This document shows, piece after piece, positions 25,206 through 36,423 of a stretch of 64,000 nt of DNA (position 1 is its first letter; each line of letters starts with the position of its first letter). This DNA comes from Adineta vaga (lineage: Eukaryota; Animalia; Rotifera): the NCBI GenBank assembly GCA_021613535.1, contig CP075497.1, positions 8,184,001 through 8,248,000 on the forward strand, read 5' to 3'. The notes beneath the pieces are model-generated. The model was not told the DNA's origin, did no database searches, and worked only from the letters and a program-made list of their open reading frames with translations. Both the position numbers and the translations under genes were made by a program.

Positions 25206-25643
25206 CTAAACTTTTGCTTTGTCTGTCAAGTGTTCTTCCAAATCATGAATCATATAATCAACCGGATCAGCAGGTCGGATCAGAACAACTTTTGCTGTCA
25301 ATGTCTACAGATAAAGAATACAATTAAAGACATGTCGATATCAAAATCGTTTAAAATATACTTTGAATAATTCATACATTCCATGTTGCATCATATATTT
25401 ATCGGCGAGAACATCTGGATTCTGATTTTGATAATTTTTATGCAACATATTATCAATTTCTTCATCTGTTGCTTCTTGTTTTTCACCATCGACATTTATT
25501 GTTATTAAACCAAGCATTTGTAAACGTCGTTGTGCTTCTGAATGTGCATTCTCGAGATCAAATTTGGATTTTTTCGTCACAACAAAACTGTCCATATCCA
25601 ACGATTGTAAATTGAACCATTCACTTTGTTGTTCATTCGCCAT
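25206..25643 (-). CDS. Small protein with C-terminal RIIa-type dimerization/docking (D/D) domain (TEX55-like), 2 exons
   Basis: Exon1 25643-25362 + exon2 25304-25206 give ...KYMMQHGMYELFKTLTAKVVLIRPADPVDYMIHDL, a D/D-domain pattern. Confidence 0.65.
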
Positions 25644-25740
25644 GATGAAAATCTGAAACGAAACAAAATCTATTCAAATCACTAATAAAAGAAAATCAAT
25701 AGATTTATTCTATTAAAAAAAGAAAAATGAGTCTTTTGAA

Positions 25741-26393
25741 TTAACCAGGTGGCCATTTGAGTTGTCGTCCGCCGAGAACATGTATATGTAGATGATATAC
25801 ACTTTGACATGCATTTCGTCCATTATTGATTACTAAACGATAACCATCATCAGCAAGACCTTGTTTTTTTGCTACTTGTGTAGCAACAACTAAGAGATGA
25901 CCAAGTAACTAAACAAAAGACGTAATTATATGAAAGACAACGAAATTGATTCTACTTTTTCATGTGATGATGTACATGATGATAATTGTGGAATAGGTTC
26001 TTTAGGAATAACTAAAAAATGTGTTGGTGCTTGTTTACTTATATCATGAAATGCTACACACTAAATTTTAGGTAAAATAAGATTTATATTAAAATTCTAT
26101 TTGTTATAGAAGAAAACCTGATCATCTTCATGAAGTAAATCAATCTTGATTTCTTTTCTAGCAATTTTACCGAAAATTGTATCTTCCGTTGGTTTAGCTG
26201 TTTGTGCTTTCGTTACTTCATCGACAATTTTGGCTGAACAATCTGAAATATTTTCAGTTGTTATCGATTAATATATTCTTTCAAACAAAAATAACTCACA
26301 AGGAGTTGAACGTGAAAAATATGCATAGGAACTAGTACGGTGTACAGTTGCCACCGAAGCTAAACTTAATAAACTTCGTATGACAGCTGTCAT
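25741..26393 (-). CDS. HINT2: Histidine triad nucleotide-binding protein with N-terminal presequence (HINT2-like), 4 exons
   Basis: [57 protein letters not shown]; R/S-rich mitochondrial-type N-terminus. Confidence 0.9.
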
Positions 26394-26498
26394 TGATTAA
26401 TTAAATATATTCTACAACACAAACAAAGCAGTCAGATTACAACGTCAAGACAAACTGAGACATGTTTATTTATTTCACGAAAACAAAAAACAAAAATA

Positions 26499-27076
26499 TT
26501 AGACAGCCGATTGACGATAATTTTTTGTTTGTAAAACTTTCACACCACACATAGTGCAGATACCTAATTTGTAAGCACAACCTGTACGAAACAAAGTAGA
26601 AAGGAATAAAATCAAATGAATTCTACAGAACAAACCTTGGCAATAGGAACTTCCTGGTTGATGAATTGTTCCTTTACAAACCTTACATTTGCTAAATTTT
26701 GTTGTATACGGACTGTACCTACAATTAGATTGATTTTATATGATGAAATAAATTTCAGATTGATAACAAACAAACCGTGTTGATTTTCCACTTAATAATT
26801 TATTTTCATTTAATTTTCGACCACCACTTTCTACAAATAACTCATGTAAAAACGAAATAAAGATTTGCAATCATCTATACATACCAACTGTATTACGAGA
26901 ACCACCTGGAAAAAAAATTGTTTTTTGAAGAAAATATTTTCAATAAATAAATCTCGAACATACTTTTCCAAATATCTTGTGTTGCAACAGTGCCAACTTT
27001 CTTTTGACCTGAAATGCAATATTCTCTTTTCCTAATCTAAGCAAATTTCTAATTACTTACAATTCTCACAAACCAT
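26499..27076 (-). CDS. CRIPT: Cysteine-rich PDZ-binding protein, multi-exon
   Basis: MVCENCQKK..WKSGSRNT..GGRKLNENKLL..CKVCKGTIHQPGSSYCQ..CAYKLGICTMCGVKVLQTKNYRQSAV. Confidence 0.92.
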
Positions 27077-27144
27077 AGTAATCTATTTAAATATATTTTT
27101 CTCTTATATCTAGAACAGAAGAAACCTATATTTATATGAACAAA

Positions 27145-33355: not shown

Positions 33356-33413
33356 CTAAAATATAAACGTCAATATATCGTATCTGAATAAAATAGATCT
33401 GTCACAAAATAAA

Positions 33414-35281
33414 CTAGTGTACACAACGTCGTTTATATTTACATTTAAAACACTGAAAATAGAAAAGTGTTACAATGATCATTATAAATGCCATTGTATA
33501 GAGAGGAACTAAATCAAAAAGAAAATATATCACTTATTTCATTAAGAAGTTTTCGGTTTTTACTTGAATAATTCAATATAGCTAATCCAGTTTTAGCATC
33601 TTTTGAACAAGTTTCAATGGACATTTCACGTTCATTGAGTGAACGAGCAAATTTCGGAAAAATGGTGACCATAAGAATTCCAATGATTTGACTAACGAAT
33701 GATAATAAATAATTCTTTTCATACATCAAAAATATAGTTTTGTTACTTAGACATGACACTAATGCCAATTGCAGTTGCTTCTGGTATTGGATAAACACAT
33801 TCCAGACTTAAATCCATTGATAGTGGTGATAAAGGTATTGATACAAAACCAACGAAAGCAAATGCAAAATAAATTAAATATTTTTCTACTCGATAAATAA
33901 TAAACTAAAAGTAATTTTTTCAAGATTGAATTATTACTCTTCTATGAATAGTCGTCATACCACAACAAGTAGAATATAAGCAGTTGAACTTGCAGCATAT
34001 AAAATCTTAGAAATTTCTTCTAATTTTCCAGTTCGATCAGCCAAATAACCGAATAATAACGATCCTAAACTACCTGCTCCAATAAACCATCCCAAAGACA
34101 ATCCAATAGTAATATTATCATAACCAAATGGACACATGATCTGTTCAACTAATGTTGATAATGTATTGAAACATCCGATAACAATTCCACAACCAATAAA
34201 TAAAACAACGAAAGATTTTGATTGGAAAAGCTAAAACAAATAAAACTTAATTCCCCAATGATTCTACATGATTACGCACTCGTTTTAATGCCAAAATAAA
34301 TGATTGTTGAATATGAGTAATTGCTTTACATGATGGCGTAGGTGGTTCAGCTGATCGTATTCCCAAACAAAGTAGAGCAGCAACGATAGCAGGTACAACA
34401 CTTACATACAACTATAAAGATGAATTAAAGCGTTTATTGTAAGATGTGTAAATATTCACTGACTAATAATGGTATTTTGTTGATGTTTGATACAATCAAT
34501 GGTGAAAGAATACTACCGATCAGAATGCCGAAAAATCCACCTGAAAATAATCGATAAAAATGGAAATCTTTCAACGAAAGGTAAACATACTTCCAATAGC
34601 AATTGAATTCGCAAATGAACGTTGATTTTCTGAAAACCATATAAAAGAAAATTTTGTTGGAATAAATAGGATAAACGTTTGTGCAAGAGCACAAAAACAT
34701 TGTCCTAAATTCACAATATTTTCGTAATTTGATAAAAAAAAACAATTTCATTTCAAATTTTACCAATCATCAATACAATGAATCGTCGATTTCTATCAAA
34801 TATTGACAAAACACTAAAACATCGAATTATACTTCCAATTGCATTCATCCAAGTTCCAATCAATAACTATAAATAGAAACAAAACAAAAAAAAGCTCTTC
34901 GAATGTATTCGTTCGAACGAAAATTATATTTGTCAAACCCCGAAACGAATACCAAGTTTATCAATTAACCATGTTGATGGTAATGTGAATGGTATTGTGA
35001 CAAACATATAGATTAAACTCAACCAATTAATTGCATCATAACTAACTTGATAATATTCTGAACCTAAATTAGCAATTGGAGAAAAATTTATCCAAATCTA
35101 CGAATAAATATATTTGATTAATTCAACAAAAATATATTCTATTTACCAATGCATTCGATATCTGAGCTAAACAAACAACAAATAAATAAAACCATCGTCG
35201 TTTATAAGTTATATATACATGTGAAATATTCTCATGCGTTTCTTCATCTTCCGTTTGACGAAGTTGTTGATAATCACTCAT
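33414..35281 (-). CDS. MFS transporter, SLC49/FLVCR family, paralog B
   Basis: TYKRRWFYLFVVCLAQISNA, INWLSLIYM, PTKFSFIWFSENQRSFAN, MCPFGYDNI, PPTPSC; colinear with paralog A. Confidence 0.85.
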
Positions 35282-35464
35282 CTAAAAACAGTTCTACTCA
35301 ATCGAATCTTTATTAAAACTGAGTTCATTTTCTCTGCGATTTTATCGTTCTCAAAAGCTTCAAAATAACATTTTTTGTACAATGATCATTTTTATCTATG
35401 AAAATATTTGAAAATAAAACAAAATAGACAAAAGATGAGAGAGAGAGAAAACGTTCCATATTTT

Positions 35465-36057
35465 CTAATAATGTTCTTCAATTGGATTTCCGTCATCGAC
35501 AAGTCCATGCTCAATCATAGCCTTTTGTCGAAGTTTTTCAATTCGTTCTTTCTTTTCTAAATCTTCTTTTTGTAATTTAAGAATCTCTTCAATCGATACT
35601 TCATAGAGTGGAACACGTAATGGTTTACGGTAATCTAATTCACCAATAAGTAGAACATTCTCTCCTCGAATAACAAATAATCCACGAGGAATATCTGCAT
35701 ATTGTTGACCAACACAAATACGTTCAAATGCTTGATGAAGAACAAGATTTCCTTTGAAGAAAAGGAAAATTTCAGTTCTATTAATTAAATACATGGCTAA
35801 TCCATTGGTTAGAATTTCATATCATATTCTATGAAATCGATCTATTCTTTTCATACATACCAAATTGATCAAGACTTCTTAAGAAAGCAATTAATGTTCG
35901 ACCATCACGTAGAATAATCATTAATTGTTCTAAAACAAATTCAATGCATATTTCAATCGAAAATTAAATCGATCGTTGTTCTCTTACTATCAATATCATC
36001 AACTAAAGTTGCAATACCCGATAAATAAAAATCATTATTAACCATACTCAAATCCAT
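35465..36057 (-). CDS. LSM1: U6 snRNA-associated Sm-like protein LSm1
   Basis: LRDGRTLIAFLRSLDQFGNLVLHQAFERI..DIPRGLFVIRGENVLLIGE. Confidence 0.93.
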
Positions 36058-36423
36058 AATTGATTGTGTACGTTTATGCAAATAGAAATTGAAATCTGAA
36101 AACGAGCAAAGATTTGCTTCTTCGTTTGTATATACATTTGAAAGTTTTCTCTTTCTCTTCTATACATCATTATTCAATCACGTATGTAACCCACTCCTAT
36201 AGTATCAATTAGGTTAAACATAAAGCGAAAAAAAACGAACAAGAAGACAGACACTCTCGGTCTTCTTCGTCTGTGTGTCGTCGCTCGTTTTTTTTTGTGC
36301 GTTATATGTAGGCGAAAGATGTACATATAAAAAAAAGTGAAACAACGCAAAAGACGACATAAAAAAAGAAGAGAGAAGTGATAATGTTATAGATTTCAAT
36401 CGACAATTTGCACTTATTTGATC

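Follow-up and report, generated by a model that had tools for sequence, protein, structure and literature searches.

Operons whose transcripts are resolved by spliced-leader (SL) trans-splicing have been described in tunicates (Ciona intestinalis and Oikopleura dioica), in Caenorhabditis elegans, where the downstream genes receive an SL2-type leader, and in the chaetognath Paraspadella gotoi, which belongs to the same wider group, Gnathifera, as the rotifers. Trans-splicing affects about half of the P. gotoi genes, and operons, which that study recognizes as neighbours separated by under 250 bp of which one or more bear the SL, account for 18% (PMC12460157). For Rotifera, a comparison published in 2008 listed operons as 'ND' (PMC2481426), in 2021 they had 'not been reported' (PMC7986045), and the 2025 chaetognath genome paper named rotifers among the lineages that have trans-splicing and operonic transcription, without rotifer data (PMC12460157). 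We found no later report of rotifer operons in the searchable literature, which agrees with the remark in a first-pass annotation of the present locus that no detailed description was known. Here we analyzed two runs of closely spaced minus-strand genes in the bdelloid rotifer Adineta vaga, within a 64,000-nt stretch of contig CP075497.1 (positions 8,184,001 to 8,248,000), hereafter the window.

Run 1 reads LSM1 > SLC49-B > FBXO31-like F-box gene, and run 2 reads SLC49-A > PPIL3 > CRIPT > HINT2 > D/D protein. We lean, with confidence a little better than even, towards regarding them as two operon-type units, resolved by polyadenylation and SL trans-splicing; SL addition and a single promoter for each run are what we infer. 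The candidacy is best supported for SLC49-B > F-box and for PPIL3 > CRIPT > HINT2 > D/D, and LSM1 > SLC49-B is the weakest link.

The runs share with tunicate operons one SL class for all genes, a housekeeping cargo and an upstream 3′ end close to the downstream acceptor (23 nt at CRIPT > HINT2, possibly about 0 nt at SLC49-A > PPIL3). As in tunicates, the SL would also be placed on monocistronic and first genes. They differ in that the gaps of A. vaga and its relatives measure 45–183 nt, whereas tunicate gaps are essentially absent, in that SL addition and polycistronic RNA are predicted here from genes and contigs, and in phylum and SL sequence, so that we assume an independent origin. With the SL2-type operons of C. 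elegans they have in common co-oriented genes, gaps of about 100 nt, the succession of AAUAAA, U-rich stretch and acceptor, a cargo rich in RNA-metabolism and mitochondrial genes, and the maintenance of operons as synteny blocks. In contrast to C. elegans, A. vaga has no evident SL2-like leader, and less sequence separates the cleavage site from the acceptor. Thus, with one leader class and a 3′ end near the acceptor, the architecture is closer to that of tunicates than to the SL2 operons. P. gotoi likewise lacks an operon-specific leader; it uses several leaders, different from that of rotifers, and its operons were demonstrated genome-wide by SL-bearing reads, whereas ours are candidates deduced from contigs.

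Acceptors of the two runs and leader genes of the genome

We searched the six-contig, 100.8-Mb A. vaga assembly, in which the window lies on contig 6. Gene identities came from Pfam scans exon by exon, and introns were counted from joints in RNA contigs and by eye. The G+C content of the window is 30.5%, and its introns are short (47–63 nt) and of the GT..AG type. From stop codon to ATG, the gaps are 183 and 58 nt in run 1 and 133, 68, 105 and 97 nt in run 2, so both runs consist of co-oriented genes with gaps under about 250 nt, a distance typically regarded as too short for an independent promoter. Each run is flanked by a divergent neighbour on its 5′ side and by a convergent neighbour on its 3′ side. 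Reading the minus strand directly, we recovered at their positions all eight genes and six gap lengths that the first-pass annotation had listed. Its names for the LSM, the two MFS, the F-box, cyclophilin, CRIPT and HIT genes were borne out by Pfam, while 'D/D' has sub-threshold matches only.

We scored as an acceptor any AG that follows at least 7 pyrimidines in 10 positions, taking as background the 2,824 ATGs that the two strands of the window contain. The acceptor directly abuts the ATG at four of the eight gene starts (35281, 33355, 29922 and 27802), as compared with 0.9% of the window ATGs (P ~5e-7, about 50-fold), and all eight starts have an acceptor within 40 nt, as compared with 27% (P ~3e-5). 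There are 26 AG|ATG sites in the window, and those with the longest following open reading frames are the four gene starts. The acceptors proposed by the first-pass annotation were as it had described them, apart from that of CRIPT: the 'aaatag' that it placed 6 nt from the start codon does not satisfy the pyrimidine criterion and is not found in Rotaria. We rejected it in favour of a conserved ttctgttctag, whose AG lies 33 nt from the ATG.

Signals for 3′-end formation accompany these acceptors. The CRIPT > HINT2 gap contains a GU/U-rich tract, ctgctttgtttgtgttgtag, besides the elements listed in Table 1; at the other junctions, AATAAA-type signals are predicted from the sequence 20–50 nt 5′ of the acceptors. 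The stop codon of the F-box gene, at the end of run 1, is followed by AATAAA.

Rotifer SL trans-splicing has reportedly been known since 2005, and its occurrence in bdelloids was the premise of the first-pass annotation. The genome indeed contains SL RNA genes, with 42 exact copies of GCTTATTACAACTTACCAAGAG followed by GT, which equals the published rotifer leader GGCTTATTACAACTTACCAAGAG (PMC3795323), and about 20 further copies with one to three changes in the whole assembly; none of the copies falls within the window. The 3′ end of the leader reads ...CTTACCAAGAG, closing in ...GAG. These genes differ by point variants only, and no specialised SL2-like leader was evident among them. The approximately 63 SL RNA gene sites often form head-to-head pairs about 157 bp apart (for example, C4:2216297-2216477 and C6:1428038-1428218), and a C9A variant (GCTTATTAAAACTTACCAAGAG) occurs in about eight copies, usually paired with a canonical copy.

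RNA contigs across the gaps of run 2

RNA assembly contigs were aligned over positions 25100–30100, that is, over run 2. They were built from 31-mers and came from four sequencing runs (X1, X4, X5 and X6) of three studies; one of the four runs carries another organism label. Identity of the contigs to the window is 99% or higher, and the introns removed are those expected. All four runs are identified as spliced RNA assemblies by the ends of their joints, CT..AC, equivalent to GT..AG on the minus strand. The 22 joints reported (15 with coordinates) equal the 22 ordinary introns counted by eye (one in D/D, three in HINT2, five in CRIPT, three in PPIL3 and 10 in SLC49-A), leaving none for a cis-splice onto the acceptors that precede the ATGs. 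Likewise, no loose end of the contigs over run 2 suggests an upstream exon cis-spliced to such an acceptor. Thus, cis-splicing from upstream exons, which the first-pass annotation had named as an observation that would count against its proposal, was not seen in run 2.

All four gaps of run 2 are crossed colinearly by contigs from which the flanking introns have been removed (three runs, two studies). X1 record 2 (4,153 nt) extends from HINT2 exon 3 through CRIPT and PPIL3 to SLC49-A, and X4 record 4 extends from the last exon of SLC49-A to HINT2. HINT2 and D/D are bridged by X1 record 1 and X4 record 3, and X5 record 8 reaches from HINT2 back beyond its acceptor into the 3′ untranslated region (UTR) of CRIPT. 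At 27319–27355, the match of contigs from X4 and X5 to the last PPIL3 exon is confined to 37 nt, flanked on either side by 255 unlike letters; they presumably represent another cyclophilin paralog that has this stretch conserved.

One upstream 3′ end could be mapped. A loose end in X5, with 23 T before 26437, is the CRIPT poly(A) tail; the second AATAAA (26470-26465) precedes the site by 28 nt, and the HINT2 acceptor AG follows it after 23 nt, so that an upstream 3′ end just before the downstream acceptor is seen at one junction, CRIPT > HINT2. X5 records 8 and 9 overlap by 30 nt exactly at this site, which we take as the overlap expected where tail and read-through branch in a 31-mer graph. 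At the 3′ end of SLC49-A, the alignment of the X5 contig breaks off at 27804, the A of the PPIL3 acceptor, and the contig continues for seven further unread letters; a poly(A) tail starting at the acceptor is a possible explanation.

Two mRNA contigs end precisely on acceptors. The D/D contig of X5 ends at 25654, and the SLC49-A contig of X6 ends at 29924 with one unaligned letter; both positions are the A of the predicted acceptor AG. As the leader ends in ...GAG, the match of a leader-bearing mRNA to the genome would extend up to these A residues and no further. As a control, X5 record 9 shows the same kind of end at 26583, an ordinary cis acceptor whose upstream exon terminates in AG. Such an end thus means that a sequence ending in AG has been spliced on, not that this sequence is specifically the leader.

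These features would fit the following course of events. RNA polymerase II would start in a short divergent promoter region 5′ of the first gene, which for run 2 would be the 85-nt spacer shared with the neighbouring kinase gene, and would read through every gene of the run. Cleavage and polyadenylation of each upstream mRNA would take place on the 5′ side of the next 3′ splice acceptor, at a distance of a few to about 25 nt. Trans-splicing of the 22–23-nt rotifer leader onto this acceptor would cap the downstream mRNA and leave it a very short 5′ UTR, with leader and ATG directly adjoining in four genes. The GU/U-rich tract between cleavage site and AG would probably serve both as the polyadenylation downstream element and as the polypyrimidine tract.

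Conservation across bdelloids and alternative explanations

Conserved gene order in related species, a check suggested in the first-pass annotation, is found in A. ricciae, in two Rotaria species and in further bdelloid contigs. Contigs recovered by protein queries (D/D, F-box and kinase) were all unspliced DNA. Both runs recur in A. ricciae in unchanged order: run 1 with gaps of 169 and 45 nt, the kinase gene, and run 2 with gaps of 131, 55, 115 and 111 nt. Run 2 is kept in Rotaria sp. Silwood1 (143, 85, 102 and 106 nt), where the kinase and SLC49-A genes diverge across 78 nt, and run 1 is kept in Rotaria sp. Silwood2, as LSM, 862 nt, MFS, 96 nt and F-box. The order also agrees in the bdelloid DNA contigs L009, L010, L011, L015 and L016, and the SLC49-B > F-box gap measures 125 and 88 nt in two bdelloid contigs. 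Orthologous gaps span 45–157 nt, apart from LSM1 > SLC49-B (169 nt in A. ricciae, 862 nt in Rotaria). No gene is called in Rotaria for about 2 kb beyond the kinase 3′ end or for 8 kb beyond the F-box gene; the two runs are therefore apparently not neighbours in Rotaria, and each seems to relocate as one block. In L009 (Logan ERR1598041; 5620-5781 and 6242-6511), the last introns of CRIPT and HINT have been lost, with the same gene order and gap acceptors.

The acceptors are kept at similar distances from the ATG across species (Table 1), and LSM1 and SLC49-A likewise retain theirs; the LSM1 acceptor is followed by 'att' in Rotaria (L019) and in the ohnologous copy (L014). Before HINT2, the AATAAA and 16 of the 17 columns of the tract tttgtttgtRttgtag are invariant among four species, and the SLC49-A > PPIL3 gap contains a conserved block, aatctaYaagattat, about 35 nt 5′ of the AG.

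In the A. vaga assembly, second copies exist only for LSM1, CRIPT and HINT; none was found for D/D, the F-box gene or PPIL3. The ohnologous region on contig 3 (L014, 8208000-8217999) contains LSM1 and, on the same strand some 2.6 kb further along, CRIPT > HINT; in this copy of the pair the gap measures 68 nt, and 7 nt separate a strong acceptor, ttattattttttcag, from the HINT ATG. An ancient whole-genome duplication is reported to be common to the bdelloids; if it is, CRIPT > HINT, present in both ohnologs, predates it. The ohnologous CRIPT has lost its last intron. The ohnologous HINT (L014 6484-7553) starts with MSDETAKAQ... and is devoid of the presequence exon of HINT2 in the window; judging from these sequences, the copies may have split into cytosolic and mitochondrial forms after the duplication. 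We consider it slightly more probable than not that SL-resolved operons are a common feature of bdelloid genomes, with polyadenylation and trans-splicing coupled within about 25 nt, as in tunicates, and some units, such as CRIPT > HINT, established before the duplication.

Several observations weigh against polycistronic units. Acceptors also precede both first genes, LSM1 and SLC49-A, and SLC49-B keeps its AG|ATG in Rotaria behind the 862-nt gap, so the acceptors mark trans-splicing generally, not operon membership. No SL letters were found on the RNA contigs of run 2, where none of the 11 loose ends is the leader; short tips are normally clipped in such contig assemblies. A search of metagenome contigs for the SL tail joined to degenerate PPIL3 codons was also blank and is uninformative, as SL plus ATG alone gave nothing either. 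Moreover, the bridging contigs do not respect the runs: X1 record 2 leaves SLC49-A, crosses the 85-nt spacer and enters the opposite-strand kinase gene, and X5 record 7 extends about 930 nt past the D/D 3′ end into the region of an ACE-like gene. What bridging demonstrates is therefore continuous overlapping transcription, and neither a single molecule nor a single promoter. The depth of X5 contigs differs many-fold among the run 2 genes, though depth cannot rank the genes. Gap identity to A. ricciae and Rotaria (0.57–0.68) is only slightly above that of introns (about 0.44–0.74 in the four-species alignment), which makes the constraint local. A conserved block, ttgcaattcttgtaYaata, lies just 3′ of the SLC49-A stop codon and could be an internal promoter element for PPIL3. 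Finally, the contigs seen of Didymodactylos carnosus, an early-branching bdelloid, have neither the kinase–SLC49-A nor the MFS–F-box adjacency. The layout, the conserved acceptors, the SL genes, the RNA over the run 2 gaps and one poly(A) site give partial support to the polycistron proposal of the first-pass annotation, and the lack of SL letters and the bridging of opposite-strand genes count against it.

Part of this evidence would also fit genes with separate promoters, each located in the gap or in the 3′ part of the upstream gene, with an outron that overlaps the upstream 3′ UTR and is trimmed at the acceptor by the SL. Such trimming is the situation of most SL1-only genes of C. elegans. 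The gene order would then persist because breakpoints are harmful where signals for control and processing overlap, and the case includes mixtures in which some pairs are co-transcribed and others have internal promoters. It accommodates the acceptors on first genes, the Rotaria SLC49-B behind 862 nt and the block right after the SLC49-A stop codon; overlapping outrons and 3′ UTRs predict the same bridging, opposite-strand genes are bridged as well, and the unequal contig depth along run 2 weakly points the same way. Gaps of 45–68 nt that already contain a poly(A) signal and an acceptor, however, leave no room for a promoter, which would have to sit in the upstream coding sequence. The runs also seem to move as units between Adineta and Rotaria, and CRIPT > HINT is retained in both ohnologs although most of its neighbours are absent from the second copy. 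We regard separate promoters as the main alternative, though less probable than not.

We think it quite unlikely that trans-splicing is not involved at all, the genes being merely compact, with minimal 5′ UTRs or with starts cis-spliced to small non-coding exons farther upstream, and the AGs being chance or cis acceptors. The missing SL letters on the run 2 contigs and the AT-rich background, in which 27% of ATGs have an acceptor within 40 nt, would agree with this. It leaves unaccounted for the roughly 50-fold enrichment of AG|ATG, acceptor positions that are kept across families while the surrounding gap diverges, the equality of the 22 joints with ordinary introns together with the lack of a loose end for an upstream exon, and the two mRNA contigs that end precisely on acceptor AGs. 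The notion of an artefact, through a collapsed or chimeric assembly or mis-called genes, has an argument in its favour in the A. ricciae annotation (CAJNOR010001163.1; L005 809-3884), where a 794-aa model fuses SLC49-B and the F-box gene over the 45-nt gap, which indicates that automated models are unreliable at this locus. It is effectively refuted by the recurrence of the layout in at least four named species, whose assemblies are independent, and in several further contigs, and by RNA contigs from three studies that match at 99% or more with the expected introns. Fusions of gene models in bdelloid annotations probably arise from operon-like spacing of this kind; in a length-limited protein search, no separate entry for the F-box protein of A. 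vaga appeared.

Features of the locus and implications for bdelloid genomes

Table 1 Features of the two runs in the window (window positions; distances in the last column are from AG to ATG across species)
Feature	Positions	Strand	Description	AG-to-ATG distance (nt)
LSM1 upstream	36097-36096	-	acceptor-like AG, 38 nt 5′ of ATG	
LSM1	35465..36057	-	ATG 36057, stop 35467-35465; LSM domain (Pfam); first gene of run 1	
Gap LSM1 > SLC49-B	35282..35464	-	183 nt; AATAAA 35314-35309; AG 35283-35282 abuts ATG	
SLC49-B	33414..35281	-	ATG 35281, stop 33416-33414; MFS transporter, paralog of SLC49-A	0
Gap SLC49-B > F-box	33356..33413	-	58 nt; acceptor attttag abuts ATG	
FBXO31-like F-box gene	32131..33355	-	ATG 33355, stop 32133-32131; last gene of run 1	0-1
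Intronless kinase gene	30008..31489	+	between the runs; convergent with F-box gene, divergent from SLC49-A	
Divergent spacer	29923..30007	.	85 nt between kinase and SLC49-A start codons	
SLC49-A	27936..29922	-	ATG 29922, stop ends 27936; MFS transporter, 11 exons; first gene of run 2	
Gap SLC49-A > PPIL3	27803..27935	-	133 nt; AG 27804-27803 abuts ATG	
PPIL3-like cyclophilin	27145..27802	-	ATG 27802, stop 27147-27145; Pro_isomerase 1.4e-22	0
Gap PPIL3 > CRIPT	27077..27144	-	68 nt; ATAAAT/TATAAA-type signal ~27136-27130; conserved AG 27111-27110	
CRIPT	26499..27076	-	ATG 27076, stop ends 26499; 6 exons	24-33
Gap CRIPT > HINT2	26394..26498	-	105 nt; two overlapping AATAAA 26474-26465; poly(A) site 26437; AG 26413-26412, 18 nt from ATG	
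HINT2-like HIT gene	25741..26393	-	ATG 26393, stop 25743-25741; HIT 1.9e-13; N-terminal presequence exon	15-18
Gap HINT2 > D/D	25644..25740	-	97 nt; AATAAA 25709-25704; AG 25654-25653, 9 nt from ATG	
D/D gene	25206..25643	-	ATG 25643, stop ends 25206; 126 aa; last gene of run 2	9-14

The identities listed in Table 1 have the following additional support. In single-exon scans, the MFS_1 match of SLC49-B stays under the curated Pfam cutoff, and CRIPT matches Cript at 6.5e-6 on a 27-aa exon, above the cutoff. The F-box gene matches F-box-like (2.6e-11) and Cyclin_D1_bind (5e-9). The N-terminus of PPIL3 is identical across the four bdelloid sequences compared. The D/D product is 100% identical to the A. 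vaga protein I4U23_029828 and had matches in bdelloids only in these searches; its name derives from sub-threshold Tex55, RIIa and Dpy-30 matches on annotated full-length proteins, with a C-terminus that is weakly of the RIIa/Tex55 type.

As for the neighbours, run 1 has on its 5′ side a plus-strand open reading frame about 360 nt away without a Pfam match, and the 3′ neighbour of run 2 is an ACE-like Peptidase_M2 gene on the plus strand, convergent with D/D. The kinase gene between the runs encodes a cytidylyltransferase (NMNAT-like) domain fused to a protein kinase domain (Pfam). Many bdelloid assemblies and metagenome contigs contain this fusion with 62–77% identity, D. carnosus has it with 42%, and its length is always about 495 aa; an exact look-up of the kinase protein of the window gave no record.

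The spacer shared by the kinase gene and SLC49-A contains a palindrome, ATTGCGTAAT, at 29939-29930, 5 nt 5′ of the SLC49-A acceptor AG (29924-29923). Across bdelloids the spacer measures 75–85 nt, with a palindrome of the type ATTGCGTAAT, ATTGCGCAAT or ATTATGTAAT; six bdelloid sequences share this motif and 'ttctag|ATG', and a second block, resembling TTGCGAAA, lies near the kinase ATG. We take the palindrome to resemble a C/EBP or PAR-bZIP site. The 85-nt spacer is probably a compact bidirectional promoter.

The locus thus contributes a poly(A) site 23 nt before the next acceptor, two contig ends on acceptors, CRIPT > HINT in both ohnologs, and a compact candidate promoter with a conserved bZIP-type palindrome. 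It also offers sites at which the proposal can be tested, namely eight acceptors, one mapped poly(A) site and the bidirectional promoter candidate. If the two runs are operons, automated gene models need correcting, as in the 794-aa fusion of A. ricciae, and operons would shape gene order and help explain the conserved gene-order blocks in otherwise rearranged bdelloid genomes. Rotifers would then join nematodes, tunicates, flatworms and chaetognaths as operon-bearing animals, which would bear on whether trans-splicing repeatedly leads to operons.

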